Assembly: GCF_000315625.1 (NCBI RefSeq)
Contig: NW_005434592.1
Coordinates: 355,383 to 396,975, forward strand
Reading direction: 5' to 3'
Origin: Guillardia theta CCMP2712
Lineage: Eukaryota; Protista; Cryptophyta
Length of the DNA: 41,593 nt
Numbering within the stretch: position 1 is the stretch's first letter; every line of letters begins with the position of its first letter. Positions 7,387-41,593 of the stretch are shown here, piece by piece. The notes under the pieces are model-generated. The model saw nothing but the letters and a program-made list of their open reading frames with translations, made no database searches and was not told where the DNA came from. The translations under genes and the position numbers were made by a program.

Positions 7387-10108
7387 TCATCGTGGGAGGG
7401 GAAAGGAGAAACAAAACATCCTCTTGCCAGGAGCGACGAGCCTCACCTCCCTCAACCTGTTCAAATCGTCAGCCTCCTCTCCTACTGCCATCTTGAGCAA
7501 GTCGCTGGTGACCTGACGGACTCCCTGGGGATGGTTCTACCCAGAGACAAGCACGCCCTCTCATGGATCTGCTCAGCTCCAGTTACGCAAAAGGACAAGA
7601 GGAGCCTGTGTGGTTTGAGACAGACCTCAGCCTCGGGGTCGTCATGCTTGGAGAAGCAGTAAAGATGAATCATAGGGGGCTCGCATGCGGAGGAGCTGTC
7701 GACGTTGAAGGCATCAAGAAAGTCGCTGGCACTGAGCAAGGAGATCAGTGGTGGCCCGTCCACTGTCCCCGAACTCACCTGGCAGGAAGGTTCATGATGA
7801 CATGCACGCGTCTTCTGGTGCTGTTCGCCTGCAAAAGGATCAACTTGAGTTCAAGTAGGGGATAAGATAATGGCACCGCGTGGCTCGCCATTCTCTGCCG
7901 AATGAATTCTCTCGCGTCCAAGTTGGAACATTGAGCGACGAGTTGCTCGCATCTTTTCCCAAACTTCTTTGCGTTGAGCTTGTAGTTCATCTTTTGATTT
8001 GACTTGTCATCGCCAACAAGTCCACATGCCTTCATTCACCTTGCAGTAATGGTGCGACTCAGGGTTCAGATCGTTGGCAAACACGTTGCAGCCCTGTTGC
8101 ATTTCAACGACGAGGTCATACAATCATTAACCACCTTCACAGCAGCGACGAGCGCAAAGGGCCCGATGCCGGCAAACACATCCCAGATCTGCCGACCCGT
8201 CAAGTCGCTGTTGAGACAGAGAGTCTGTACCTCACTGTCAGGCTCGAAACCTTCTACCAGCACCTCTCTCTCGTGGTCCAGCCTCGAATTCCAATAGACC
8301 TGAGGGTCAGGGATGTGAGCCTTGCCGTTCATTCGAGTACCACTGCTGCACAGTGGCGAAACATAGGATCGTTGACCTTGCTGTAATCGAGCTTGAAAAC
8401 AAGATCGTTTTGCTTCACCTTTCAGCAAGAGATTTGATATTCGACATGAAAGGGCCTCCTCCTCTTAACATATTACTACCTCTGTAGACATATCAGGAAT
8501 CCCCGCCAAGACTTCGAACTTTTAAAGAAAAGTGTGAGGTCAACTCAATCTGAGTACCAATATTCTCTATCACCTCAGGCACGCGCAACTTGTTTTCTAT
8601 CTGCCCTACCTAAAGTAAACGCGAGTCAACAGGCACAGATGCTTCTTCAATGGCAGCATTCTTTGTTGACTACAGTCTTGATGTGTGCCGACTTGAGCAA
8701 AATCACCTGTAGACATCTGGATAAGCAGAAGCAGTGGACAAGGTCGAGAGGATACTTGTGCGATCAAGTGTTTGAAGGGCTGGTGCTCATCCTTCAGGTT
8801 CAGATGTGCGATATGCCCTTGAGACAGTCAATCTCAGATCCCAGGGCGAATGGGTTGGAGGCTCACCGATCTGTTGGAATCCAGTAGGAATTGTGACATT
8901 CTGATCCACAAGGTCAACAAGTGAAGCAGCCGCACAGCTCAAGGCACCTCAGGCAGCAACTCTCGCATCATCTCGTCGGCCCCTAGGTTCTGATGAGTGA
9001 TCATGACCTGATCGATCGATCATCGAGAGATACAGCTTCAAGATTATATGCTTTCCTTCTCGCTCACAATGCTTGCATCGTACTTCTCCGAGAAGCGTTT
9101 CACGTCATCGTGCATATCGTCCATTCCGTATGCATGGTCGTTGCTGGTGTTTCTGAACATGGCTTGCATACTTCCATCGTCTTCGACATGTTTTGATACA
9201 AGAAGTATCCTGTCCTGTTGTTAACCCCGAGAACAAAGAGTGGACATGAATCACTCGCCTTCTCTTGTCTGGATTTTCATGATCTTTCCTTACAATCTGT
9301 TGAGAGCAATCAAACGGCATGCCAAGAAGCTTTCATCGCGGACGTCACAACTAACCTTCAGTTTTGGTAAGTTGAAGAGGTACTTTCTCAACTCCGTGTG
9401 AACAAGGGAGCAATGTCTACCGAGCTTGTAAACAAAACATCTTTTTACAATCCAAAGTCTGCCTTGCATCTAGTCGGATTGCCGGCACAACGATCTCCTT
9501 TGAGAACGAAGAGATATTCAGGCTGCCATTGCGTTAGTGTCGATCTTGAACTTCTCGTGCTTCACTCGTTCTCCCGGTTCATATCTCCACCAGTGTGGAC
9601 AGCTCGACACTGTGTCTTGCGAATCTTCTTGGTGTCATGCTGCGCTGCTACACCTGCATGTGGCGATGTGGGTTGTAGATTAGAGACAGCCAAACAGACC
9701 TGAAGGATCCGCGGGTCGCCCCCACAGCCTCTTTCTCCTCGATGTGAGGCTCTCGACCGTGTGACTTGAAGCTGAACCCATGGAGAGGAAAGGGATCCAT
9801 CCAAACAGGTTCCACCATTGCCCGAGAGACCCTCCCCTCAGGTTCATCCTGCATTCCACTACTCTCGCTTCCTTGAACCTTTGCTGCGACACAACATTGT
9901 CAGAAATCGCGCCCGTCAAGGCTCATTCGTGGGATCCAACCTTCGATCGTGGCGAACGATCAATGAGCCAAGGGGAGGAGGACGATAAGGGGGAAGTCGA
10001 GGAGCAGCAGAGGGCTGAGGCTTCGTTTCTGACGGCGCCATGCTCGGATCGGAGCCCGCCTAGACTGCATGGGATGAACCCGAAGCTGGGCTGCCGTACC
10101 ATCCTCAT
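7387..10108 (-). CDS. TRM5: tRNA (guanine37-N1)-methyltransferase Trm5, multi-exon; start uncertain
   Basis: Exon motifs [62 protein letters not shown] and the C-terminal [19 protein letters not shown]. Confidence 0.9.
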
Positions 10109-10615
10109 GCTTCCTTAGTGCATCAAGAGCGCTTGTGCAGGCCACGCTGTTGCAGCCGTTCCACTGGCTGTTGCCTTTGACCCGTGACGCCCCCGGGGCG
10201 GCGGCCCCGGGCCCGGTTGGTACCGTACGGTACTACGGTCACCCGGTACGGTAGTGGGCCGGGCCCAAACTTAAGCCGGGCCCGTACTTAACGGTACCTT
10301 GGGCGGCTACCGGCTAAGGCTGAACTTGCCTTGGCTTGAAGTGCTTGAAGTGACTGAGGGCCGGGGGGCCCTCAGTGACCCTTCGACTCTGTCCGGTCAC
10401 CCGGGTGGTCTCAGTACTGGCAGTCCGATCGGGCCCGGGCCCCGGGTGGCCCGGCACCGTGAGCCTGGCCACCCGGTGACCGGCGGGCCGCGGCGGCCCC
10501 CAGTGACCCTCCGAACTCGATGATCGTCCGTGACAGCTCAGCGGCGAAGGCTTGAAGCCTGGTGACCGTCGTAAAGGTATACCGTCAATGTATTTCACTA
10601 CATCACTCAGTCAAG

Positions 10616-13600
10616 CTAGTCAGCTGAGGCTGCCTTCCTGATACTATGATCCACCTGCTGCCTCCAACCGGCGAGGATCGCACGTGCGGAGCGAGTGGTC
10701 CAACCATGCTCCATCCTCCAAACCCTCCGCCGGATTCGACTACGCTGGGTTCGGAGCATGTGGCTCCTTCGCTGCCAGACACGAAGCAGGTCGAAGAATC
10801 GCGAGAGCAGTTTAGCGTCTCTCTGCCAAGCGTCATGATCTGCCGCAGCCAATGAGATCATACCCATGATAATCTTTTTTCCCCCTCACCACTCAACATT
10901 GCAAGGCGAACTCCATAAAGCCTCCGACAGCTCTGTTTGAAAAAACGCTTCTGTGGTGCAGACAACTCATTTGAAGTACAAAAAGATCGATCAAAACATT
11001 ACCACCATAGCCTTGCAGACGAATGAGAACGAACGGCTTGAAAACCGCCAGAAGAAAAAGGCAAATGACAGCGAGTGCCAAGAAAGGGGAAAGACATGAC
11101 AGAGCACCGAGAGAGAAACGACGCGAGAGGACATGAAGGAAAACGTCAACGACGCCCACTCACGTAGGAAACGAGAGACAATGTAAGACGAAAATGACCC
11201 TTGAACACACACGCTGATAAAAACCAAACATCAAAAACATTCCCGTCAGAAAAAAAAATCACCTTCGCAAAAAAAATCGATTGAAAAGAGTTCGCTTCCA
11301 GGTAACAAAACAATTTGAAACAACATGAGAACGTGCAGATGAATGTCCAACAACGAAAACTCCAATACCAAATCGAAAAAACGCTCGTCTCCCCGCGTGC
11401 TCTCGCCAGCCCTCCATCGCCTCCCTCGCCGTCTCCCGCCCCCGCCGCCCCGTCAGCCGCCCCACGACCGCCGCCTGTACCCGCCGTGCCCGCCGCCCTC
11501 CCGGCCCACGCCCGCAGCGCCTCCCCGACACTCCCCGCCTCCTCCCCGCGCCTCGCCCGGCCCGACAGGATCTCCCCGACTCGCCTCGCCCGCGCTCGTC
11601 TCCCCGCGTGCTCTCGCCAGCCCTCCATCGCCTCCCTCNNNNNNNNNNNNNNNNNNNNNNNNNNNNNNNNNNNNNNNNNNNNNNNNNNNNNNNNNNNNNN
11701 NNNNNNNNNNNNNNNNNNNNNNNNNNNNNNNNNNNNNNCCGCAGCGCCTCCCCGACACTCCCCGCCTCCTCCCCGCGCCTCGCCCGGCCCGACAGGATCT
11801 CCCCGACTCGCCTCGCCCGCGCTCGTCTCCCCGCGTGCTCTCGCCAGCCCTCCATCGCCTCCCTCGCCGTCTCCCGCCCCCGCCGCCCCGTCAGCCGCCC
11901 CACGACCNNNNNNNNNNNNNNNNNNNNNNNNNNNNNNNNNNNNNNNNNNNNNNNNNNNNNNNNNNNNNNNNNNNNNNNNNNNNNNNNNNNNNNNNNNNNN
12001 NNNNNNNNNNNNNNNNNNNNNNNNNNNNNNNNNNNNNNNNNNNNNNNNNNNNNNNNNNNNNNNNNNNNNNNNNNNNNNNNNNNNNNNNNNNNNNNNNNNN
12101 NNNNNNNNNNNNNNNNNNNNNNNNNNNNNNNNNCGTGCCCGCGCCCTCCCCGCGTGCTCTCGCCAGCCCTCCATCGCCTCCCTCGCCGTCTCCCGCCCCC
12201 GCCGCCCCGTCAGCCGCCCCACGACCGCCGCCTGTACCCGCCGTGCCCGCGCCCTCCCGGCCCACGCCCGCAGCGCCTCCCCGACACTCCCCGCCTCCTC
12301 CCCGCGCCTCGCCCGGCCCGACAGGATCTCCCCGACTCGCCTCGCCCGCGCTCGTCTCTCCACGTACGTTTTCCATTTCCGTACGTGTTTGTCTTTTGAA
12401 TATGAATCGGACATCGTTTTCAATCTGAATGTTGTCTGCTCTTGCCACTTTTGTTTCAGGTGTTTCTCGTTTATGGCTTCTTTCCACGTTCGTACTCCCT
12501 TTCGAATTGTTGTAGCCTTTTTCGTCTTTTCATGTTTCATTATCTTCTCTTGGAGATACTTTTTGAATTGTGTTTCGTCTATCCATTTTTTCATACATTT
12601 TGATCTCAGGTTTGTTTGTGTATTGATCATTATTGTTTGGCAATTTCCGATTCGAAGGATATTCTTTTCTATGTCTCTGTTGCAATTTTTCCACTGGTTC
12701 AATGCCAAGGTTTTGCATCGCTCTTGCACCTTTGTTAGCCAATGGTTCATTATCAATCTTTCATAGCTGAGCACTTTGAGAAACTCGCACCATGAATTCA
12801 TTGATTTCTTAAGCATTGTTTTCTGTTTCAAACTGAAATGTTTGACCAACACAGAGAAAATTTCCAATTTTAGCTCGATGGGGCATGGGTGGCGTGGGTT
12901 CCCATCTTTGAGAGTTTTGAAACTGACACTTAAGGTTGCCGTACTTCTCCTGAACACAAGGGAATCTCTCAATTCCTTTCCTGCCTTTGAGAATTCGAAC
13001 CATTGTTGCATGGATTCTCTAATCAACTTCCGTGATGCAAGATGGATTTTTGACTCAACACCGCGCTTAACCACTACAATTTGTTCAGAATATTCTTGCC
13101 AACATCGAAAGATAGATAACTTCAACGATTTCCGTCTGTGTCCCTCGTAAAAATGTCCAAATTGGCAGATTTCAGCACCTGGCGCCTGGACTTGAACGGA
13201 CCAGTCAGATATGCACTGCTTGATCTTGTTGTTTGACTGAAGCCTTGCCATCATGTTCTCCAACACCTGATACCTCTTCTGCTTCCTTCTCAGCACAAGC
13301 GTAGTTGCAATCCATGCATCAAAGTAGGTAATCATCATGTCTTTCTCTGACTTTTTTCCAATGTGTGCGATAGCTGCTGACGCCGTCCTCTTGTTTGAAG
13401 TGATCATCTGCCAGGTATCCGTAGAGTTCCTCAACACTTCAAAACGAGTTCTAACCAACATTTTAGAGCAAAACCGCTCTATCACTTTTTTTCTTTGTTT
13501 GCGATCTAGATATGCCAGTCGAAGAGTTTCAAAAGTCCTCCATTTCTGCTTCAATTTTCGTTTTGTCTGTAGGGAGTGCATGCTTTTTCGAAGGATGATT

Positions 13601-14157
13601 GAGCGACCAGCATAACAGTCAAGTTCGCCAAAGAAAAACTTCTGCAGAGCACGATTTTGTTTGAGAAGAATCACACCAAATTGATCAGAGCAGACATGCT
13701 TCTTGGACCGGAAAGACATGCATGACTCAACAGAATTTTTCCATAACAACCAGAATCTCTTGTACTCAAAGGTCCTCCTGAGATTTCGGAGAGTTCTGCG
13801 CGATCTGCATAGAACAATCAACTTTTGCATCCACCGCAGAGCCTGGAGTCGCTCCAAGTCATTCACGACGGACAAGAACTTTGACATGCAGTTATGCAGG
13901 ACTTTGTTTCTCTGGAACAAAGATTGCCAGGTGTCTAGACATGACTGTAAAAGTGCACGGATACATCTCCTCCTGAGTAGTTTCTGGAAAACATGTATGT
14001 TGATCTCTTCGTCATCAACAATGCTCTTTACAATCGCTCTGGTCATGGAAATATTAACAACCAATATTGACTTCATCTCCCCTTGAAGCGAACGAGGAAA
14101 GTAGTGCTTCACTCGCCTCTGTTTCCAACGATAGAAAATTAGAATTTTCTGCAACAT
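10616..14157 (-). CDS. Sfi1-like (centrin-binding type) Trp-repeat helical protein; probably extends further upstream
   Basis: A long, basic, helical ORF with recurring F/LxxWK/R motifs about 33 aa apart. The terminal exon (to 10616) carries the same W repeats. Confidence 0.65.
11383..12360. repeat. GC-rich 210-bp coding tandem repeat (70 aa unit), collapsed by gaps
   Basis: Near-identical units flank two N gaps. Each unit encodes two Trp repeats. Confidence 0.9.
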
Positions 14158-21977: not shown

Positions 21978-22600
21978 TCTAACTAAACAAGCCAGCTAAG
22001 CTAGGCTTGTTTTCAAGGCTTTTCTTCTGTGCGCCCTGTTTCTGATCGCATAACATTTTCATGGGCAACAATCCCAATCGATGCGTTCTTCACCTTATAA
22101 AACGCGAGCTAATGCAATAAAATCCCCTTTCTAACAAGCCAGCTAGGCTTGTTTTCTTTTCTTCTGTGCGCCCTGTTTCTGATCGCATAACACTTTCATG
22201 GGCAACAATCCCAATCGATGCGTTCTTCACCTTATAAAACGCGAGCTAATGCAATAAAATCCCCTTTCTAACAAGCCAGCTAGGCTTGTTTTCTTTTCTT
22301 CTGTGCGCCCTGTTTCTGATCGCATAACACTTTCATGGGCAACAATCCCAATCGATGCGTTCTTCACCTTATAAAACGCGAGCTAATGCAATAAAATCCC
22401 CTTTCTAACAATCCAGCTAGGTGCAATAAAATCCCCTTTCTAACTAACAAGCCAGCTAGGCTTGTTTTTTTCTTCTGTGCGCCCTGTTTCTGATCGCATA
22501 ACATTTTCATGGGCAACAATCCCAATCGATGCGTTCTTCACCTTATAAAACGCGAGCTAATGCGAAATCCCCTTTCTTGTAACAAGCCAGCTAGGCTTGT
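21978..22600. repeat. 137-bp tandem repeat, ~4.5 copies
   Basis: ATGGGCAACAATCCCAATCG occurs at 22061, 22198, 22335 and 22509. The last interval carries 37 extra bp from a local duplication. Confidence 0.95.
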
Positions 22601-31993: not shown

Positions 31994-32073
31994 AGGGTTT
32001 AGGGTTTAGGGTTTAGGGTTTAGGGTTTAGGGTTTAGGGTTTAGGGTTTAGGGTTTAGGGTTTAGGGTTTAGG
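31994..32073 (+). repeat. Telomeric repeat block 1 (TTTAGGG)n
   Basis: Perfect heptamer array. Confidence 0.98.
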
Positions 32074-32188
32074 AGCGCCGGTTATTTCAGGCGAGCGCCG
32101 GTTATTTCAGGCAGCGCCGGTTATTTCAGGCAGCGCCGGTTGTTTCAGGCAGCGCCGGTTATTTCAGGCAGCGCCGGTTATTTCAGGC
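32074..32188 (+). repeat. Six copies of the 19-mer AGCGCCGGTTATTTCAGGC at the element 5' end
   Basis: Direct observation. Confidence 0.95.
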
Positions 32189-32913
32189 ACCATGGCTGCA
32201 CGCGTGGTGTAGGGGAAGCTGCCAGGGCGCCAAGGAAGCTGCAAGCGAGAGGTTTGTATACTTCAAATAGCTTTCTAAGTATGGTTCTTCAGTATGATGA
32301 AAATGTTCGCAACCTGCTGTATCGGAGATCATGCCAATACACGCAGAGCGGACTTGTGGATGCCTCTGTCCTCGAAGCTGATCTCGTCGAGAGGGTGAAG
32401 AGCTTCGCGAAGCGTTATCCGAACAGCAGGACAGCCCAGGCTTGCAAGGCTGTGGAGGGATGCACCCCCGACGCTATCGCAGAAGCCATCCGCTCGACAT
32501 GTCAGCAGGCACGACGTGAGCTTCTCCAAGAAGCGATGACTGGATGGAGTGACGCATCCAGAGAATGGTTTATGCAGCAGATTGAAGAAGCCAAGAAGGA
32601 GAAGGTCGAGACATACACCGCCTCAGCAGGCAACGAGGTGACTTCCTTCATCTCCATGACTCTCCTGGGCATCTCCTCGGTGTATGTCAACCATGAAGAA
32701 AAGCTGAAGAAGAAATTCGAAGAGATCGGACTGATCGTAGACTCAGTGCAAGAGAGTAAAGCAATCATGTGGAAGGCTCCGTATAGACCCGAGATAGCGA
32801 GTGCTGAGGAGATCCCGGTGACTGTTTCCTTCCTCCGCATTGCACAAGCGGAGAAGCTCTGGCAGGGAAGAGAGGACTTCGCGATCGATGGTCGCAAGTT
32901 CACAGCTGTACAT
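32074..32913 (+). mobile_element. Family B retroelement, 5' portion (5' 19-mer array plus ORF1 N-half), 3'-truncated
   Basis: ORF 32140-32919 is homologous to the N-part of ORF1 at 34658 (RYPNSRT/QYPQSRT, AIAEAIRSTC/ALAEAIRQTC, EEIPV/DEIPV, LWQGREDFAIDGR/LWKGQTNFRIDGK). Confidence 0.85.
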
Positions 32914-33049
32914 GTTTAGGGTTTAGGGTTTAGGGTTTAGGGTTTAGGGTTTAGGGTTTAGGGTTTAGGGTTTAGGGTTTAGGGTTTAGGGTTTAGGGTT
33001 TAGGGTTTAGGGTTTAGGGTTTAGGGTTTAGGGTTTAGGGTTTAGGGTT
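32914..33049 (+). repeat. Telomeric repeat block 2
   Basis: Perfect (TTTAGGG)n. Confidence 0.98.
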
Positions 33050-34049
33050 CACAATGGAGGCAGCATCTCCGTCAAGCCAAGAGGACATGCAGCTCGTCAG
33101 CGAGCTGTCAGCAGTCATCGAAGATGCAGCTTCTTTGAACGAGGCGGGAACGAGCGAGCCGATCAAGCTGGTCCTGGACAAGGCCGTTGGCAACCTCCAC
33201 GACACCTTCTACTCTCCGGGGAGCCTGGAGTTCATGTCGCTGGGAGAGTGGGCGAAGATGCCAGAGGAGCAGGGAGTTGGGCGCAACGTTCTCAAGGAGA
33301 AGCTGGGGAAGTGGCTGCAGAGCAAGCGCTGGACTCGCGTGCAAGGAGAGAGCAAGAAGGCAAGGAGGGGCAGCGCGTTCTCGCCACGGGCAACGGCAGC
33401 TGCTGAGCTTGAGCAGGAGGCGGAGAGCGACGACATAGAGCGTCGATCTCTTAGCTTCCTGTTCATAGCACTGAGTAAATTCGCAGAGATGCATGTGGCC
33501 TGCTCGCTGAAGGTGGACAAGAAGGACCGACTGCGAGTGGAGATGAGGGAAGATGACGAAGAAGAGGAAGACATGGAGGAAGAGCAAGGCGAGGGCTAGC
33601 CTGGAAACAGGGCGAGCCCGTACCGAGCTTGAGCTGAGCTCAAGGTAAGGAGAGAAGGTAGGAGGCGACCGAAAGCCAAGGTGAGGAGAGGCAACTCTCC
33701 TGACTGAGGCTGAGGAAGCTGAATGGAGGAGGAGTAGGTGGCGACCGAAGGCCAAGGTGAGGAGAGGCAACTCTCCTGACTGAGGCTGAGGAAGCTGAAT
33801 GGAGGTAGAGTAGGTGGCGACCGAAGGCCAAGGTGAGGAGAGGCAACTCTCCTGACTGAGGCTGAGGAAGCCAAGAGAAGACAGCAGAAGTAGAAAGTAG
33901 AAAGACGCCTCAGAAGCAGGGTTCGCATTGTAGGCCGTGTACTCCCAGTGCTCGAGCGCCTCTTTAGACTAGGATCAAATTGCATAAGCCCACAACGAGG
34001 CCGAGCAACATTCTAGCATTCTAATAAACTCACATAATAATAATAATAA
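33050..34049 (+). mobile_element. Family B retroelement, 5'-truncated: ORF1 C-terminus, 3' UTR and (TAA)5 tail; no ORF2
   Basis: ORF 33054-33599 is homologous to the C-terminus of ORF1-A (KLVLDKAVGNLHDTFYSPG/KLRLDGAIVGLYDSLSSPG, LGEWA/LKEWA, FLFIALSK/LLFLALNK, acidic tail). It is followed by ~435 bp of UTR, AATAAA and (TAA)5 joined to TAGGG. Confidence 0.88.
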
Positions 34050-34173
34050 TAGGGTTTAGGGTTTAGGGTTTAGGGTTTAGGGTTTAGGGTTTAGGGTTTA
34101 GGGTTTAGGGTTTAGGGTTTAGTTTTAGCGTTTAAGGGTCTAGGGTTTAGGGTTTAGGGTTTAAGGTTTAGGG
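34050..34173 (+). repeat. Telomeric repeat block 3 (degenerate near the gap)
   Basis: (TTTAGGG)n with variant units next to the N run. Confidence 0.95.
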
Positions 34174-34273
34174 NNNNNNNNNNNNNNNNNNNNNNNNNNN
34201 NNNNNNNNNNNNNNNNNNNNNNNNNNNNNNNNNNNNNNNNNNNNNNNNNNNNNNNNNNNNNNNNNNNNNNNNN

Positions 34274-34496
34274 GTGAGGAGAGGCAACTCTCCTGACTGA
34301 GGCTGAGGAAGCCAAGAGAAGACAGCAGAAGTAGAGAGTAGAAAGACGCCTCAGAAGCAGGGTTCGCATTGTAGGCCGTGTACTCCCAGTGCTCGAGCGC
34401 CTCTTTAGACTAGGATCAAATTGCATAAGCCCACAACGAGGCCGAGCAACATTCTAGCATTCTAATAAACTCACATAATAATAATAATAATAATAA
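34274..34496 (+). mobile_element. Second family B 3' end with a (TAA)7 tail
   Basis: Nearly identical to 33833-34049 (one visible substitution), but with a different tail length. Confidence 0.9.
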
Positions 34497-34549
34497 TAGG
34501 GTTTAGGGTTTAGGGTTTAGGGTTTAGGGTTTAGGGTTTAGGGTTTAGG
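34497..34549 (+). repeat. Telomeric repeat block 4
   Basis: Perfect (TTTAGGG)n. Confidence 0.98.
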
Positions 34550-34657
34550 AGGCCGCTGGAGTAACAGACATGCTCTCCTCCCCTGCAGTTTGAGGGGATC
34601 CCTGCGAGCTAGGGTGCTGAACAGGACATTTTTCTGTGCAGAAACGGTTGTTTGATC

Positions 34658-36763
34658 ATGTGGTATCTATCCAAAGAGGAAAGGAAACAGATTGCTCGTG
34701 TCCGAGTTTCCCAGTTCCTAAACAAGGACACGACACCTTCAGCACCTTCGCTAGGAGAGCTGATCCGAAGATTGGAACACTTCGTCAGGCAGTACCCTCA
34801 GAGCAGGACAGGCAGAGCCTTGCAGTCCAAGGAAGTCTCGATGAACGCCTTAGCCGAAGCCATTCGACAGACCTGCAAACATGCTGAAGTCAGGAGCCAG
34901 GAGGATGCCATCAAAGAATGGGGGGAAGAAGGACAGTCGTGGTATGTCTCTGCATGGAACGCAGACAAACAGGAGGTACTAGACAAGAGTGCCTGCATCG
35001 ATGCTTCAGGAGCGTCCCCCGAGAGTGGTAAACTGATTACCATGGCTATCCTCGGAGTTCCTACCCAGTACATAAAACAAGTTGAGGTACTGTGTGAGAA
35101 GTTGAAGGATCAAGGACTCTTGGTGCACGAGGAGCAGGGCAAGAAATGCATCTCGTGGAGAGCCCCGATCAAGAAAGATTTGATTCCGACAGTGGATGAA
35201 ATCCCAGTCGTGGCAACACTCCAATTGAACGACGCAGCAGAACTGCTGTGGAAAGGACAGACGAACTTCAGGATCGACGGAAAGATGATCCGCGCGGTGA
35301 ACGCGCATTCGAAGCATCCTTGCTCCTTCAAGATAAGGCCACAGAAGGATAAGCACTCTGGCAAGGCGGGGGCCCTAGCTGAGTTCTCTCACCTCCTCAA
35401 GATGAATGGCATGAACTCAGCTGGGATTACGGAGATCTATCGTCAACACCTGCTGCAACAAGGAATAGCTGTGTTGGAGGTGCAGCCGGAAGCGGGCATG
35501 CAGCTAGAGGTCAAGACGAAGAGGAGACCTCAAGGTCAGCCCAACAAACGCACTTTCGCAGCAGCCGGAGTGGACGAGATACGACAAGGAAGAGAGATCG
35601 ATTGGATTGCGAGATGCTCTTCGACGGACGTCCTGAGCACCACGCTACGGATGTTTGAGGGAGATGACAGGAATGGAGGAAGCATACACCTCGGACTGAT
35701 GTCGGAAGATGAAAAGATCCTCAAATGGTTCACTACTCAGGTTAGTGCAATCACCAGGGTAACGAGACAGCATCCAATTAGGTTGGACTTCTTGCCCGAC
35801 GCGCTAGGAGCAGTACCACGAAGAGTGACCTATGAGGTGCTGGTCAAGAGTAAAGCACAGAAGGGAAGGTTCACAAGAGAGGAAGCTGAACAGATCTGCG
35901 ACGGGGAGGATCTCTCTATGGGCATGACAATTCGAGGACTGAGACGGATCGTGGCGAGCTGGAAGGAGTCAGCGGCTGAGCACATCGTCAAGATCTCCTC
36001 GAAGGAAGATGTCGAGACCAACAGCTGGAACGGTGAACATCTAGTGCTCAGCTTCTCAGAAAAAGAAACGGCGATCGACATACTCAGGTCCTTTGCGCCA
36101 TGGGACAGGGCGGGGAAACTTCTTCTCCTAGAGCCAGGCAGTGCCAACCTTTGGGAAGCGATCGCTACAGAACCCCCCACGGAGCCTCTGTGGGCACAGG
36201 TAGATCTCGAACGGATCGAGAATGAGATCAACATCCCAGAACCAGAGGCAAACGTGGTCCTCGAAGACATCTACAAAGTTCTGGAGGAGACTGTCAACCA
36301 GGGACAGAGTGCAGAAAACCAAGCTTGCAAACTCAGGCTCGATGGAGCCATCGTCGGCCTGTACGACAGCTTGTCATCTCCTGGAAATGCATGTTTTCCG
36401 ACGCTGAAGGAATGGGCGGAATCATCCTCGGCAACCCAGGACGACGACATGCAAGTTTTGAAGAGTAAGATTGCAAGAGTAAGCGAGCAGCATGCGTGGG
36501 AGACGGTAGCATCAAGAAGACGCCAGGGAGCCTTTGCAAAAGCAACAGGGAGAGGAGGGGAGAAACAACAAAAAGAATTTCGAACTGACCTGTTGTTTCT
36601 TGCCCTGAATAAATTAGTTCTCACAGCTACGCTAACCTACCAAGGCAGCGTTGGCTCGGGAGACGAAATTGAGTTTCTCTTGAGCAAGGCAGAGGAGGAG
36701 ATGGGACTGGAGATGGAAGAGGAGAGTGGCAACCAAGAGGGAGAGGTTGCCTCTCAACTCTAA
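34658..36763 (+). CDS. Retrotransposon ORF1 protein (~700 aa, no recognised domain)
   Basis: Long intronless ORF ending 9 bp before the ORF2 ATG; homologous to the family B ORFs. Confidence 0.85.
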   Translation: MWYLSKEERKQIARVRVSQFLNKDTTPSAPSLGELIRRLEHFVRQYPQSRTGRALQSKEVSMNALAEAIRQTCKHAEVRSQEDAIKEWGEEGQSWYVSAWNADKQEVLDKSACIDASGASPESGKLITMAILGVPTQYIKQVEVLCEKLKDQGLLVHEEQGKKCISWRAPIKKDLIPTVDEIPVVATLQLNDAAELLWKGQTNFRIDGKMIRAVNAHSKHPCSFKIRPQKDKHSGKAGALAEFSHLLKMNGMNSAGITEIYRQHLLQQGIAVLEVQPEAGMQLEVKTKRRPQGQPNKRTFAAAGVDEIRQGREIDWIARCSSTDVLSTTLRMFEGDDRNGGSIHLGLMSEDEKILKWFTTQVSAITRVTRQHPIRLDFLPDALGAVPRRVTYEVLVKSKAQKGRFTREEAEQICDGEDLSMGMTIRGLRRIVASWKESAAEHIVKISSKEDVETNSWNGEHLVLSFSEKETAIDILRSFAPWDRAGKLLLLEPGSANLWEAIATEPPTEPLWAQVDLERIENEINIPEPEANVVLEDIYKVLEETVNQGQSAENQACKLRLDGAIVGLYDSLSSPGNACFPTLKEWAESSSATQDDDMQVLKSKIARVSEQHAWETVASRRRQGAFAKATGRGGEKQQKEFRTDLLFLALNKLVLTATLTYQGSVGSGDEIEFLLSKAEEEMGLEMEEESGNQEGEVASQL

Positions 36764-36772
36764 AACCGAATC

Positions 36773-37726
36773 ATGACAGGAGGAGGAAGGGAGGAGGAAG
36801 GGGGGAGTGCCGGGAGTAGGCAAGGGGGGGAGATGGAAACGGTTTCAAAGGAAACGCAACATGTAGATAGAACACTGTATTTTTTTGATTGGATCGAGGA
36901 GATCCCATGGTCAGACAAACGAGGCGACAAGGAATTTGGCATCACTGCCCTGAACAATCGAGGAGTAAGCGGATTTTTATGCGAGAACATGATCGAAGTT
37001 ACTCTCAATGAGATGAGCAAGGCTCTTCAAGGAGGACGAGCAATACATATGGTACGCAAAGGGAGAGCTCGTGAGGACCAGCAAACGCGGAACATCATCT
37101 TCTTGCCAAGGGTAATATCCAGTCTGCGAGACGAGGCGTCCCGCTTGAGAGTCGGGAACAGATTTCACCTCAGCAGTTTGAGAGATGAGCAACACACCTT
37201 CCTGTTCCCAACTATCATCCACAGCAACCACTGGATTCTAATTGCATTAAGATATGATCGGCGATGCGCGTACATCTTGGACCCCCTCTGCGAGGACAGA
37301 ACGAGCACAACGAGGGACCCACGAGGGATCGAGGGAGCGAGGAATCTTGTAACAACGGGGGAGCACGCAAAAGGAGCAAGAGAAATGGCTGAGCTGACAA
37401 TCGGAGTGATCGAACACATCTTTGACGATCAGACCAATGCCCCATGGCAGATACAGTGGTGCTCAGCCTTCCAACAGGAAGATAACTTCAACTGCGGAGT
37501 GTTCGCTATCCTTCACACCCTACTGCTCTGCGAGACAAATCAAGACTGGCTAGCAACGATGGAAACGAGGACAAGACTAAGACTTCCGCAAGAATGGCTG
37601 ATGCAAACCAGAACACAACTGATTGCAGCTCTCACCCATCTAGAGAAGATGGAGGAAACGGCCCAGGTAATTCTGCGATCTCTGCCGAAGGAGGCGAGGG
37701 TGCAAGAGAGGAAACGGCCCAGGTAA
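36773..37726 (+). CDS. ORF2 part 1: Ulp1/C48-like cysteine protease domain
   Basis: FLFPTIIHSNHWILIAL...YILDPL...FQQEDNFNCGVFAI gives the His-Asp-Gln-Cys catalytic order of clan CE (SUMO protease) peptidases. Confidence 0.85.
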   Translation: MTGGGREEEGGSAGSRQGGEMETVSKETQHVDRTLYFFDWIEEIPWSDKRGDKEFGITALNNRGVSGFLCENMIEVTLNEMSKALQGGRAIHMVRKGRAREDQQTRNIIFLPRVISSLRDEASRLRVGNRFHLSSLRDEQHTFLFPTIIHSNHWILIALRYDRRCAYILDPLCEDRTSTTRDPRGIEGARNLVTTGEHAKGAREMAELTIGVIEHIFDDQTNAPWQIQWCSAFQQEDNFNCGVFAILHTLLLCETNQDWLATMETRTRLRLPQEWLMQTRTQLIAALTHLEKMEETAQVILRSLPKEARVQERKRPR

Positions 37727-38099
37727 TTCTGCGATCTCTGCCGAAGAAGGCGAGGGTGCAAGAGAGCTTGAAATCGACGACAAAGCCGGAGGAGGAGGTA
37801 CAGCCAAACGCAATCCAGCGGCTGATGACCTCGACGACAAAGCTTGAGGAGGAGGTACAGCCAAACGCAATCCAGCGGCCGATGACCTCGACGGCAAAGC
37901 CTGAGGAGAAGGTACAGCCGATCGCAATCCAGCGGCAGGCGACCACCACGAAGCCCCAACCAAGACTTTTTGGTGAGGAAATGGAGGAGAATGCACACTC
38001 AGGAGAGAAAACCTCCCAGAGAGGGAAGGAGCGGAGGGGGAAAAGGCAGGAGGAGCAAAGGGGCAATGATTGGGCGCAGATGCATCGAAAAAGCTCAGA

Positions 38100-38885
38100 C
38101 CCAGGTTTCCTCATCTCACAAAATGTGAATGGTTGCAATCACTTTGTTCTCAAGCACATCCTCGCATACTTAATCCAGTCCTTCCAACCTGGGGTTGTGC
38201 TACTACAAGAGGTAAGGGTCTCGGCCCGCGACGAGAACAAATTAAGGAAGATGATCAAGGAGAACTGGGCCTGCTACAGAATCTTCCTGGGGCCTGCAAA
38301 GATCAATGCCAAGAAGGGGAAAGGAGACCTGAGGTTGGTAACGCTGGTCCACGCTTCCCTCTCGCCTTCCCCTTCCCATGCCGCTCAGGCGTGCAACAAA
38401 GAAAAGAAATATCGAAACCGAGTGTTTTCGATCAAAGTCGGAACAGGGAAAAATTCTTTCGTAGTCACGAACCTCCATCAGGTACCGGCGGAAAATGCTA
38501 CACCTCGCTCTGGGAACGAGAGAGACACACATCATAGCCGGAGACTTTAATGCAGCAAGAACCAACACAACAACACCAATGCGGAGAGGATATTCCCCCT
38601 CATCTATCACCGCAAAAGCAGATGAGAGATTCGAGAAATTCCTGGCAGACCTTTCCGCACACCGTACACTCTCATATGAACAGATCAGCGAGACTGGGAC
38701 AACATTTACCTTCTCAACATGGTACAAACAAGAATTGATAGAAGCCAAACTCGACGCAGTCCTCGCTATCCACCCCCCAACTAATGAGGACAACTTCCCC
38801 AACATCTCCCTTCAATCGTGGACGGTCGACGGCTGTGTGATAGGGGGAGCAGTTGATCACAGAGCCCTGGTGGTGCAAGTGCACA
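38100..38885 (+). CDS. ORF2 part 2: apurinic/apyrimidinic-like endonuclease (frameshifted near 38500)
   Basis: ISQNVNG, VVLLQEV, IIAGDFNA, TFTF, KLDAVL and VDHRAL motifs, split over two reading frames. Confidence 0.9.
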
Positions 38886-39986
38886 CCAAGTTCACATCCG
38901 AGGAGACGCAGCTAATCCCACGAGTGGAAGTGCATCAGATGAATTCACGACAGAAGAAGGGGGAAACCCCTAAAAGCAGATGGGTGCTGGATCGCGATAC
39001 GTGGGAGGAGGAGAAGATCGAATGGGCGCAACAACTAGATGCAAACATACGAGACATGCGAGCTAAGGCGCAAGAATGTAACATTTGTGAGATGCTCGCC
39101 AACTCTCTACCACTAAAGGAGGTGAAAATCAGAAAGGGAGGGAGGCGACACGCGAACAAAGAACAAATGGATTTGAAGAGATCGATCCGCAACTTGCGGA
39201 CTAAACTTAGGGAAGCATCACAGCAAAGACCAGCGACTGGAGTACCTACGGAAGCTACATTACAACGAGAATTGCGAACTAAGATCGAGAGGTTCAGAAC
39301 GATATGTGAAGAACAAAACAACGAAGTTTTCCAAGAGATCTGCCAACAGCAGCAAACACGGCTTGGCACGGTAGGCAGCCGTGAATCCCAGAATGCAATG
39401 GGACGCAAGAATGATTTCACTCCCAAAGAACCGATGATAAGTCAAGACATCAAGAAAAAACACCCTAACTCCCTTCGTTGCCACAAAGGCTTGGCTCTTA
39501 GACTGCTCGGCAAGATAGTCGACAATGCCGACGAGCTCATCAACCAACTCGAAGCAACCCTATCTAGCGAAGACACGAGGGGTGTTAGAGCATTTTGGAG
39601 TGCAAACCAGCAACTGATGATTGGGATCGAGCGAGAGGGGACAGATGACTGGCTCTTTCTATCACTGCTACCTGCAAACACAATCACGAAAGCAATTGTA
39701 GCACTAGAAGAATCTAAGCGCTGGTAATGNNNNNNNNNNNNNNNNNNNNNNNNNNNNNNNNNNNNNNNNNNNNNNNNNNNNNNNNNNNNNNNNNNNNNNN
39801 NNNNNNNNNNNNNNNNNNNNNNNNNNNNNNNNNNNNNNNNNNNNNNNNNNNNNNNNNNNNNNNNNNNNNNNNNNNNNNNNNNNNNNNNNNNNNNNNNNNN
39901 NNNNNNNNNNNNNNNNNNNNNNNNNNNNNNNNNNNNNNNNNNNNNNNNNNNNNNNNNNNNNNNNNNNNNNNNNNNNNNNNNNNNAC

Positions 39987-41593
39987 CACCTGAGGGGGGT
40001 GCAGCTTTCAAGGAGACAACAACAGGAAATCACCAGACCCCTGGCACCGGGAGAGATTGATGTCTGGCTCGCCTCGGCGCCGAGACGAAAGGCTGCAGGA
40101 CTTGACCTCATTTCGAACGAAGTGCTGCGGGCGCTGCCACCAGCATGCCGAGAGGAAGTTGGCAAGTTAGTCAATGCAGCCCTAGAAGGCAAAGCTGAGG
40201 TTCTCAACAAGACAGCGAGAGTACGCCTCCTGCCAAAAAATCAATTCTGTCACATTCTCGAAAACATGCGGCCTATATGCGTCATGTCAACGCTTACTCG
40301 GCTGGTTCAGGCAATCCTGGCGCATCGTCTGAGTAAGACAGTAGAAGCAAATAACGTCCTCACAAACTTCCAGGAGGGGTTCCGTCCAGGCAGAAGCACA
40401 AGTCGGCAGGCTCATCGACTGATCTCGATCGTAGAAGAAGCAGAAGAGGCCAAAACGTCCCTCATTCTCTTGTACCTGGACTTTGCGAACTTCTTTAACA
40501 ATGTGGCAATCGAGGTGGTCGAGCAGGCAATGAACAGCCTAGGCTTCCATCCTGAGGACATTAGAACTGTGATAGCCTGCAACAGTGGAGTCGAGCTGCA
40601 AATACAAACAAACGAGTTCAACACAGGGAAAATACCTCTAATGATCGGGCTGCCTCAAGGTGGAGCAAGTAGCCCACAACTGGCCAACTTGGTGCTATGC
40701 ATCCTCTCTAGGCAATTGGACAAGTGCAGCACAGGAACAACAAACAACCTGTCCTTCGCCGATGACATGGTACTCATCGCACACACGATGAAAGAAATGC
40801 GAGAATTGGTAGCAGTGGTGGATTCCTTCTGCAAATGGTCAGGACTGCAAATCAACAATAAGAAATCAGAGATAACCAGCTTCGACTATGCTCGCAAGGG
40901 AGAGGTTCCTGGTGCGAACAAAATAACGGTCATGGGGGAACCTGTCGAAGCCCTACCGGCTACTAAACCGTTCAAATATCTCGGCTATCGCATCTCTCTG
41001 TGGAAGGAAGAAAGACGAAGAATAAAGGGCTGCCCTTTCACTTGGGGAGAACGAGCATACGTCTTTGAAAAAACCAAAGAACTGATCAAAAACATCAGCT
41101 CGTCGAGTTATACTCCTGCGCAAAAATTCTACCTGGTGAAAGTTGGAATTCTCAACGTCTTTCGCTACTCCGCAGTCATGACTGGATGGACTTGGCGAGA
41201 TCTACAAGAATTAGATCAACTGTGGATCAGAGCTTTTAAACAAGCGTTAGGACTGAGCAAAAGTACAGGGAATGGTATATTCTACCTGCCAACAGAGAAT
41301 GGAGGGCTGCAGGTCCCTCATCCTGCCCCAATCCTAGGGCGAGCAGCGCTACGATACATCGAACGAGAAGTGAATAGTAAGCATGGTGGAGACATCCAAG
41401 ATAGACTGATATCTAAACTCAGAAACTGGTTTGCGGAATGGGGATGCCAAACAATCCTCGAGCTCCAAAGAGAAATGAATTTTCGAACTATGGAGCGTGA
41501 TGTGGTGCGGGGACCCGAAGCTTTAGCAGTCTGGCTGGCGGAAAAACTAAACACGAGGATCAGCTGGGCCCACATAGAAGCAGGTCACCTACC
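39987..41593 (+). CDS. ORF2 part 3: non-LTR reverse transcriptase, open to the window end
   Basis: Manual translation: KAAGLDLI, LLPK, MRPICV, FQEGFRPGRST, LYLDFANFF, GLPQGGASSP, FADD (40755-40766), GLQINNKKS, FKYLG, YLPTENGGL. Confidence 0.95.

Follow-up and report, generated by a model that had tools for sequence, protein, structure and literature searches.

A probable ORF1-only non-LTR retrotransposon family in the telomere repeats of the cryptophyte Guillardia theta

Introduction

To our knowledge, gag-only telomeric retrotransposons that use the reverse transcriptase of a partner are essentially known from Drosophila, where telomerase is lost. HeT-A, which occurs there together with TART and TAHRE, encodes only gag (ORF1) and no reverse transcriptase (PMC5537684). 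It is the most abundant element in mixed head-to-tail arrays that run in one direction, and negative selection acts on its coding sequence (PMC5537684). The poly(A) of HeT-A faces the centromere because the element is added to the chromosome end (PMC5537684).

SART1 and TRAS1 of Bombyx mori are autonomous elements, which possess an ORF1 as well as an ORF2 with apurinic endonuclease-like (APE) and reverse transcriptase (RT) functions and which end in poly(A) (PMC7265360). The SART1 proteins also work in trans, on any RNA with a SART1 3′ UTR (PMC7265360). A further type of reduced element is HAL1 (“half-L1”) of mammals, which the HAL1 passage of PMC5753468 (citing Bao and Jurka 2010) describes as non-autonomous, encoding only ORF1p, and as having arisen several times independently. 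Telomeric LINEs of Guillardia or other cryptophytes were not found described in the papers searched (Repbase excluded).

Here, we analyze a stretch of 41,593 nucleotides from Guillardia theta CCMP2712 (contig NW_005434592.1, positions 355,383–396,975), referred to as the window. An initial annotation had proposed that positions 33050–34049 of the window are an ORF1-only, non-autonomous element resembling HeT-A or HAL1. We conclude with good confidence that this stretch belongs to a family, designated B, of non-autonomous ORF1-only non-LTR retrotransposons that insert into (TTTAGGG)n at the chromosome ends of G. theta.

Results

Organization of the telomeric array in the window

The array takes up the right-hand 9.6 kb of the window and consists of elements parted by perfect (TTTAGGG)n tracts; it stops at the end of the contig (G000:C82). 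The telomere repeat is matched 41 times in the window (0 matches expected by chance), and the G-rich strand is the sense strand of every element of the array. The following features were assigned:

up to 31993: unique DNA, preceding the element array
31994–32073, plus strand: first (TTTAGGG)n tract, where unique subtelomeric DNA gives way to the element array
32074–32919, plus strand: 5′ part of a family B element, with six 19-bp repeats (32074–32189), 5′ UTR, and ORF1 codons 1–212 (32281–32916)
32920–33049, plus strand: (TTTAGGG)19 tract, parting the two B pieces
33050–34049, plus strand: 5′-truncated family B copy, with the final 181 codons of ORF1, 3′ UTR, and tail
33054–33599, plus strand: C-terminal ORF1 fragment; its ATG is an internal Met, and its TAG (33597–33599) is a copy-specific premature stop
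33649–33871, plus strand: 76-bp tandem repeat (2.9 units) in the 3′ UTR, with a long imperfect hairpin with GCAA loop per unit
33964–34034, plus strand: 3′-terminal module common to the autonomous families, TTTAGAC ... TCTAGCATTCTAATAAA (including AATAAA at 34023–34028) ... CTCACA
34035–34049, plus strand: (TAA)5 tail, joining TAGGGTT in the fixed register of family B
34050–34173, plus strand: telomere tract, partly degenerate, followed by a 100-N assembly gap (34174–34273)
34274–34495, plus strand: 3′ end of another B copy with (TAA)7 tail; its 5′ portion is missing owing to the gap
34496–34550, plus strand: telomere tract, preceding family A
34551–41593, plus strand: autonomous LINE of family A, cut by the contig end, with one 20-bp 5′ unit, ORF1 (34652–36763), and ORF2 (from 36773)

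The unique part of the window holds a 1003-amino acid ORF with internal 21-bp repeats (11146–14157, minus strand) and a 137/174-bp tandem repeat (22019–22595).

The pieces at 32074–32919 and 33050–34049 do not form one element but are two separate insertions with 19 telomere units between them. The first piece is cut off on its 3′ side and is directly adjoined by telomere repeats; this break at 32919/32920 points to an eroded end that was probably healed by telomerase. The second piece, originally annotated as the ORF1-only element itself, turned out to be a 5′-truncated copy. The designation holds for family B, but not for this stretch as a whole element. Most matching copies have a reading frame that extends upstream for 694 or more codons without a stop, indicating that the ATG at 33054 is internal and that the window copy is truncated.

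The positions originally given for the 3′ part of this copy were confirmed: the TAG is followed 424 nt on by AATAAA and then by the (TAA)5 tail, to which TAGGGTTT is directly joined. The TAG is indeed present at 33599, but it is not the stop of the family, which is a TGA located 33 nt further on (window-equivalent positions 33630–33632). In the window copy, the TAG sits in a divergent 15-nt patch, and the frame runs 11 codons beyond this position in the copy on L033; the length of the frame shows the same for the 28 other copies compared. The hairpins of the 76-bp repeat were predicted by RNA folding to have energies of −32.4 and −32.7 kcal/mol, with z scores of −5.9 and −4.6 compared with shuffled sequences.

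In the family A element of the window, the last nucleotide of the ORF1 stop is 36763 and ORF2 starts with the ATG at 36773, leaving the 9-nt spacer that had been claimed. ORF2 of this copy is broken, with at least two frameshifts around 56/57-bp repeats and an N gap at ∼39730–39985. As also claimed, both B pieces are free of internal stops despite their low identity to the ORF1 of family A, which is 29% for 32140–32916 (residues 1–217 of A, E 1e-30) and 27% for 33054–33596 (residues 536–656 of A, E 2e-10).

Full-length structure and abundance of family B

Full-length B measures ∼2.9 kb, and a copy of 2.87 kb at L033:3143–6009 falls within the 2.5–3 kb that had been predicted for the intact element. 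The telomere repeat is followed by 19-bp units (1 to >12), a short 5′ UTR, and one ORF of 700–713 amino acids. The ORF is succeeded by a ∼420-nt 3′ UTR with the 76-bp repeats, TCTAGCATTCTAATAAACTCACA, (TAA)n, and TAGGGTT. Most copies contain a 39-nt in-frame segment of the ORF that is missing from the L033 copy. The element encodes neither a reverse transcriptase nor an endonuclease, and a Pfam search with its ORF found no enzyme domain.

Every family begins with its own 19–20-bp tandem unit, present in 1 to ∼29 copies (e.g. window 32074–32189 and L048:117–700), and at least seven 5′-repeat types exist in the genome. These units may be a promoter array or the product of repeated copying at the 5′ end of the RNA.

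When the 1-kb stretch of the window copy was searched against the same genome, at least 40 full matches at 95–99% identity were found among 237 candidates. In a six-frame search, in which 61 of 691 candidates were scored, 59 of the 61 ORF1 copies were fully open without a stop, and all were 97–100% identical. Genome-wide motif counts gave 130 ORF1 ends (27-mer), 122 UTR starts (25-mer), and 104 B 3′ termini (28-mer), with counts of 0 for the reversed-pattern controls of all three motifs. The ORF is annotated repeatedly as “hypothetical protein” in G. theta CCMP2712.

The arrays are head-to-tail and mix B with other families; B is the most abundant member of these uniform arrays, which also hold the pol-bearing families. 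Individual B copies differ in the number of 5′ repeats, the point of 5′ truncation, and their neighbors (A, B, B2, C, and D). Identical idiosyncratic B 3′ junctions were observed on two pairs of contigs (C225:62062 and C289:2725 on the minus strand; C149:116646 and C206:1094 on the minus strand). Such pairs represent duplicated chromosome ends or redundant contigs, so that the B copy counts are somewhat inflated. The near-identity of B copies could, in part, have the same origin in array duplication or redundant contigs.

Sequence downstream of B ORF1

According to the initial annotation, other copies with a B-type ORF1 that continues into a pol ORF would make the window copy a mere deletion product. 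We compared ORF1 ends with the 3′ region by coordinates on contigs with complete listings, and none of the 71 ends compared was seen to run into pol (68 were followed). The B 3′ region is entered from 68 of the 71 ends: in 66 cases, the B 3′ UTR starts exactly 60 nt on, and in two cases the B 3′ terminus lies ∼370–445 nt on. The other three ends (C46:583321, C72:422693, and C106:248565) are without a detectable B UTR or terminus, and a family C pol is located ∼1–4 kb downstream of C72:422693. In every locus read, what comes after the B ORF1 is either the UTR or a healed truncation.

A related family, B2 (P0016, 716 amino acids), possesses its own 20-bp 5′ repeat and is 61–62% identical to B ORF1. 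At C39:588577–590724 and C321:13715–15862, the next element begins within ∼400–600 nt, indicating that B2 is also without pol. Neither in the loci read nor in the coordinate comparisons was pol found directly after the ORF1 of B or B2.

Autonomous families and the common 3′ end

Family A spans ∼10.8 kb (C15:1035715–1046530) and starts with up to ∼29 copies of a 20-bp unit. Its ORF1 is an open frame of 716 codons (703 amino acids by the listed start). ORF2 is unusually long; it is intact in copies outside the window, comprising 2503–2504 amino acids (L048:2892–9998 plus L052:3–1400). It contains APE (E 5.5e-8), RVT_1 (E 3.8e-35), and zf-RVT domains and, near the N terminus, a weak Ulp1/C48 protease-like match (E 8.6e-4, below the Pfam cut-off). 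By sequence matches in the PDB, the RT of the putative partners is about equally close to R2 (4e-23) and L1 ORF2p (2e-19). Pfam searches with the ORF1 of A and B returned only sub-threshold noise and, for B, no zinc-knuckle match.

Family C (L034:1–5072, corresponding to G000:C183:68000–73072) encodes a pol that is 48% identical to that of A, in open frames of up to 2261 amino acids. An N-terminal ORF1 on contig C321 was ascribed to family C solely because a C-type pol lies downstream of it; it shows 42% identity to the ORF1 of A and 35% to that of B. In a full-length alignment, B ORF1 shows 31% identity to A ORF1. This low identity to both families, together with the existence of the separate family B2, argues that B did not come about by a recent deletion in A or C.

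At the 3′ end, 25 of the 26 terminal nucleotides of B are identical to family C, which ends in GAGTCTAATAAACTCAAA(TAA)n followed by TAGGG. Family A ends in TCTAGCATTCTAATAAAATCGAC(TAC)4 followed by TAGGG and has the 17-nt block TCTAGCATTCTAATAAA in common with B, identical and at the same place. In A, B, and C, TTTAGAC is found ∼55–70 nt upstream, and in single-sequence folds UUAGAC pairs with (G/U)UCUAA just before the tail. Compared with shuffled sequences, the 3′-terminal hairpins of the three families reach z scores of −0.1 to −2.2. Because these folds are not significantly stable alone, the common fold is a lead and not a proof.

On the reverse strand of L013 (2500–2830; G000:C321 ∼9980–10310), chimeras of C 5′ repeats, a piece of the B 3′ UTR, and a piece of the C 3′ UTR lie between telomere tracts and look like products of template switching or aborted insertion. 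The chimeric B/C 3′ UTR junctions are compatible with a single enzyme that switched between the two RNAs as templates.

Insertion site and orientation

We collected 33 junctions through the TCTAATAAA-plus-tail motif. The tail comprises two to nine triplets, and the next bases are TAGGGTT in 30 of the 33 junctions, in 28 of these without extra bases. The register of the B 3′ junction, (TAA)n followed by TAGGGTT, is fixed. Full-length elements of all families begin after TTTAG(G). All elements are separated by (TTTAGGG)n tracts of 1–19 units; at the junctions collected here, the tract before the next element has 1–14 units, with up to 19 between elements overall.

Behind elements that are cut on their 3′ side, the telomere repeats resume in no particular register (window 32919/32920; G000:C115:4440 on the minus strand, C17:997468, and C176:10005). 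The simplest explanation for these variable-register ends is erosion of the chromosome end and subsequent healing by telomerase.

The B sense strand points to the chromosome end: 40 of the 42 minus-strand copies listed lie within 32 kb of the contig start, and plus-strand copies, where the length of the contig is known, are located close to contig ends. As the sense strand of B is the G-rich strand, the (TAA)n tail faces the chromosome end, and the C-rich strand would serve as primer for the first strand. Copies of B bear the marks of target-primed insertion, i.e. 5′ truncation, a variable tail, and a defined 3′ end. Specific insertion into (TTTAGGG)n at chromosome ends is part of the reading that we consider probable as a whole.

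Purifying selection on B ORF1

The initial annotation had suggested that selection acts on the ORF1 of B itself, and B ORF1 is indeed under purifying selection. Among 29 independent copies, classified against their majority-rule reference, synonymous variants of the ORF outnumber nonsynonymous ones (67 against 39) and no nonsense variant is present, whereas ∼2.6–2.7 nonsynonymous variants per synonymous variant are expected under neutrality with the observed transition bias (binomial p = 8e-14). Codon positions 3, 1, and 2 account for 70, 23, and 13 of the 106 variants, respectively. Omega is ∼0.14 for variants common to at least two copies and 0.33 for singletons. Per site, the UTR is 2.5–3 times more variable than the ORF.

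A Logan contig from another sample (L054) contains a B copy of ∼92% nucleotide identity with an open 713-amino acid ORF. Compared with a CCMP2712 copy, dS is 0.246 and dN is 0.035 (omega 0.14). The layout of L054 (telomere repeats, 19-bp units, ORF, and the start of the B UTR) is the same, which together with the open ORF indicates that the ORF1-only form and its coding capacity predate the current burst of copies.

Transcripts and predicted protein

RNA-seq had been suggested as a check on B, and sense-strand reads were found to cover the element, with depth dropping at its 3′ end. Raw reads of RNA run X19 (∼6% of the run read) gave 4564 reads on L028, nearly all of one strand, which was identified as the sense strand by non-templated A runs at the read ends. 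In this 3′-biased, tag-like library, depth peaks at 2279–2412 of L028 (up to 330), shortly before the element end at ∼2503, and then falls to 12 and to 0. An internal peak at 135–536 with A runs (position 432) may be due to internal priming. The Logan contig runs X1, X9, and X11 were rejected as evidence of expression, as the depth of B at 100–300 times that of the flank could be copy number.

Transcriptome-derived homologues of B are P0013 and P0036, and a transcriptome-derived protein of Hanusia phi is 38% identical to B ORF1. P0013 (461 amino acids, EukProt), labeled Heterocapsa arctica, is 96% identical to Guillardia B ORF1; its presence in a dinoflagellate set is most likely due to cross-contamination or prey RNA.

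The AlphaFold2 model of B ORF1, calculated with 14 homologues, is of only moderate quality, with a mean pLDDT of 64 and 298 residues at 70–90. Its best PDB matches are the multi-RRM proteins Prp24, raver1, and hnRNP A1 UP1 (E ∼1e-4, low TM-scores), and the model tentatively suggests a multi-RRM-like RNA-binding fold for ORF1p. An RNA-binding ORF1p is expected from LINE biology. A comparison of B ORF1 with Atlas features gave no usable match.

Discussion

Alternative explanations

Deletion derivatives of LINEs are common, and the window copy could stem from an autonomous element by an internal deletion, either recent or unique to this copy, with an ORF2 in the normal form of the family. The three of 71 ORF1 ends without a detectable B UTR, one of which (C72:422693) has a family C pol ∼1–4 kb downstream, would agree with such an origin. 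However, the same UTR or terminus follows the other 68 ends, the 104 B 3′ termini are identical, and the layout recurs at a dS of 0.25 in a copy from another sample. Moreover, B ORF1 is just 31% identical to that of A and 35% identical to that of C, and with B2 there is a second ORF1-only family at 61–62% identity to B. We consider this origin highly improbable and largely refuted, in line with the initial annotation, which had argued against a recent deletion derivative. It is also unlikely that B is mobilized neither by A nor by C but by an unseen autonomous sibling of its own lineage that combines a B-type ORF1 with pol. Drosophila has such an element in TAHRE (PMC5537684), at least seven 5′-repeat types are present in the genome, three ORF1 ends are without a detectable B UTR, and 40–61 candidates were scored per search. 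Yet no pol match directly follows the ORF1 of B or B2 in the loci read or in the coordinate comparisons, and the terminal 26 nt of B already match family C.

Equally doubtful is the view that B has ceased to be mobile and is now a multicopy subtelomeric host gene family, which spreads when chromosome ends recombine or are duplicated and whose protein is kept by selection for a host function, e.g. end protection. Subtelomeres are known to exchange sequence, the identical junctions on different contigs point to block duplication, and ORF1 is under strong purifying selection with nearly all copies open. But duplicated host genes fit poorly with copies whose 5′ and 3′ end points agree to the nucleotide, whereas the tails (2–9 TAA units), the intervening telomere tracts (1–14 units), the 5′ repeat numbers, and the neighbors (A, B, B2, C, and D) differ and 5′ truncations occur at various points. 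These features are the marks of separate target-primed insertions. In addition, the singleton omega of 0.33 is as expected if the copies are mostly recent insertions that stem from lineages under selection.

Proposed mechanism

We therefore favor family B as a non-autonomous retrotransposon. Because it encodes only a predicted RNA-binding protein, the copying enzyme would have to come from its larger neighbors. In the proposed mechanism, the multi-RRM-like ORF1p would coat its own B RNA, and the resulting particle would borrow its ORF2 protein, with APE and RT, from an autonomous family that shares the arrays. The more probable RT donor is family C, and family A is a possible one, an assignment that rests on 17–26 nt of 3′ identity. 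The donor would recognize the common 3′-terminal hairpin and the tail of TCTAATAAA plus triplet repeat. Its endonuclease would then nick the C-rich strand of the telomere repeat, where reverse transcription would be primed in a SART-like manner. That the SART1 proteins act in trans on RNA with their 3′ UTR makes the borrowing step plausible for B. Telomerase would go on adding repeats, and eroded ends would be healed, which would account for the layered array of the window.

A more far-reaching possibility, to which we give little weight at present, is that B ORF1p serves as a telomere-targeting or end-protecting factor that is needed by the autonomous families and perhaps by the cell, so that chromosome ends would be upheld jointly by telomerase and a retrotransposon consortium. 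In Drosophila, HeT-A Gag is a factor on which TART depends. If true, joint upkeep in Guillardia would represent an intermediate, convergent state between canonical and Drosophila-type telomeres.

Comparison with known elements

Like HeT-A, family B is gag-only, telomeric, under selection, presumably dependent on a partner, and the most abundant element alongside pol-encoding telomeric LINEs. Unlike HeT-A, its tail faces the chromosome end instead of the centromere and consists of (TAA)n instead of poly(A). Moreover, B is embedded in TTTAGGG repeats, whereas HeT-A, TART, and TAHRE replace telomerase repeats. No sequence relation of B to HeT-A was found by Pfam or zinc-knuckle matches.

With SART1, B has in common the insertion at one position of the telomere repeat, one (SART-like) orientation, and the coexistence with telomere repeats. 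In contrast to SART and TRAS elements, it has no APE or RT of its own, both of which are present in family A. As far as HAL1 is described in the source cited above, B resembles it as an ORF1-only LINE derivative, of which there are two families here (B and B2). It differs in being telomere-specific, whereas HAL1 is dispersed and L1-derived, and its ORF1 has just 31–35% identity with the ORF1s of the autonomous families found here. In Magnaporthe oryzae, the shorter element MoTeR2 occurs in telomere repeats beside its RT-encoding relative MoTeR1. MoTeR2 belongs to a different element class than B and to a fungal TTAGGG telomere.

Family B thus belongs to none of the HeT-A, HAL1, and SART families, but combines a HeT-A/HAL1-like function with a SART-like mechanism. 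The likeness to HeT-A and HAL1 proposed at the outset holds for the coding content (ORF1-only), but not for integration, which for B is opposite in direction to HeT-A and takes place in telomerase-type repeats at a fixed register.

The division of labor known from Drosophila telomeres appears here a second time and independently, in a cryptophyte alga that has retained telomerase-type repeats, in combination with SART-like site-specific insertion. Family B offers a second, unrelated system in which to ask why elements keep only the RNA-binding protein and how such a protein is selected. The system also bears on the host, i.e. on whether telomere-targeted elements are tolerated or used. At the scaffold ends of Guillardia, it accounts for ∼130 gene models listed as “hypothetical protein”, and it portrays the chromosome ends of this alga as layered records of erosion, healing, and insertion.
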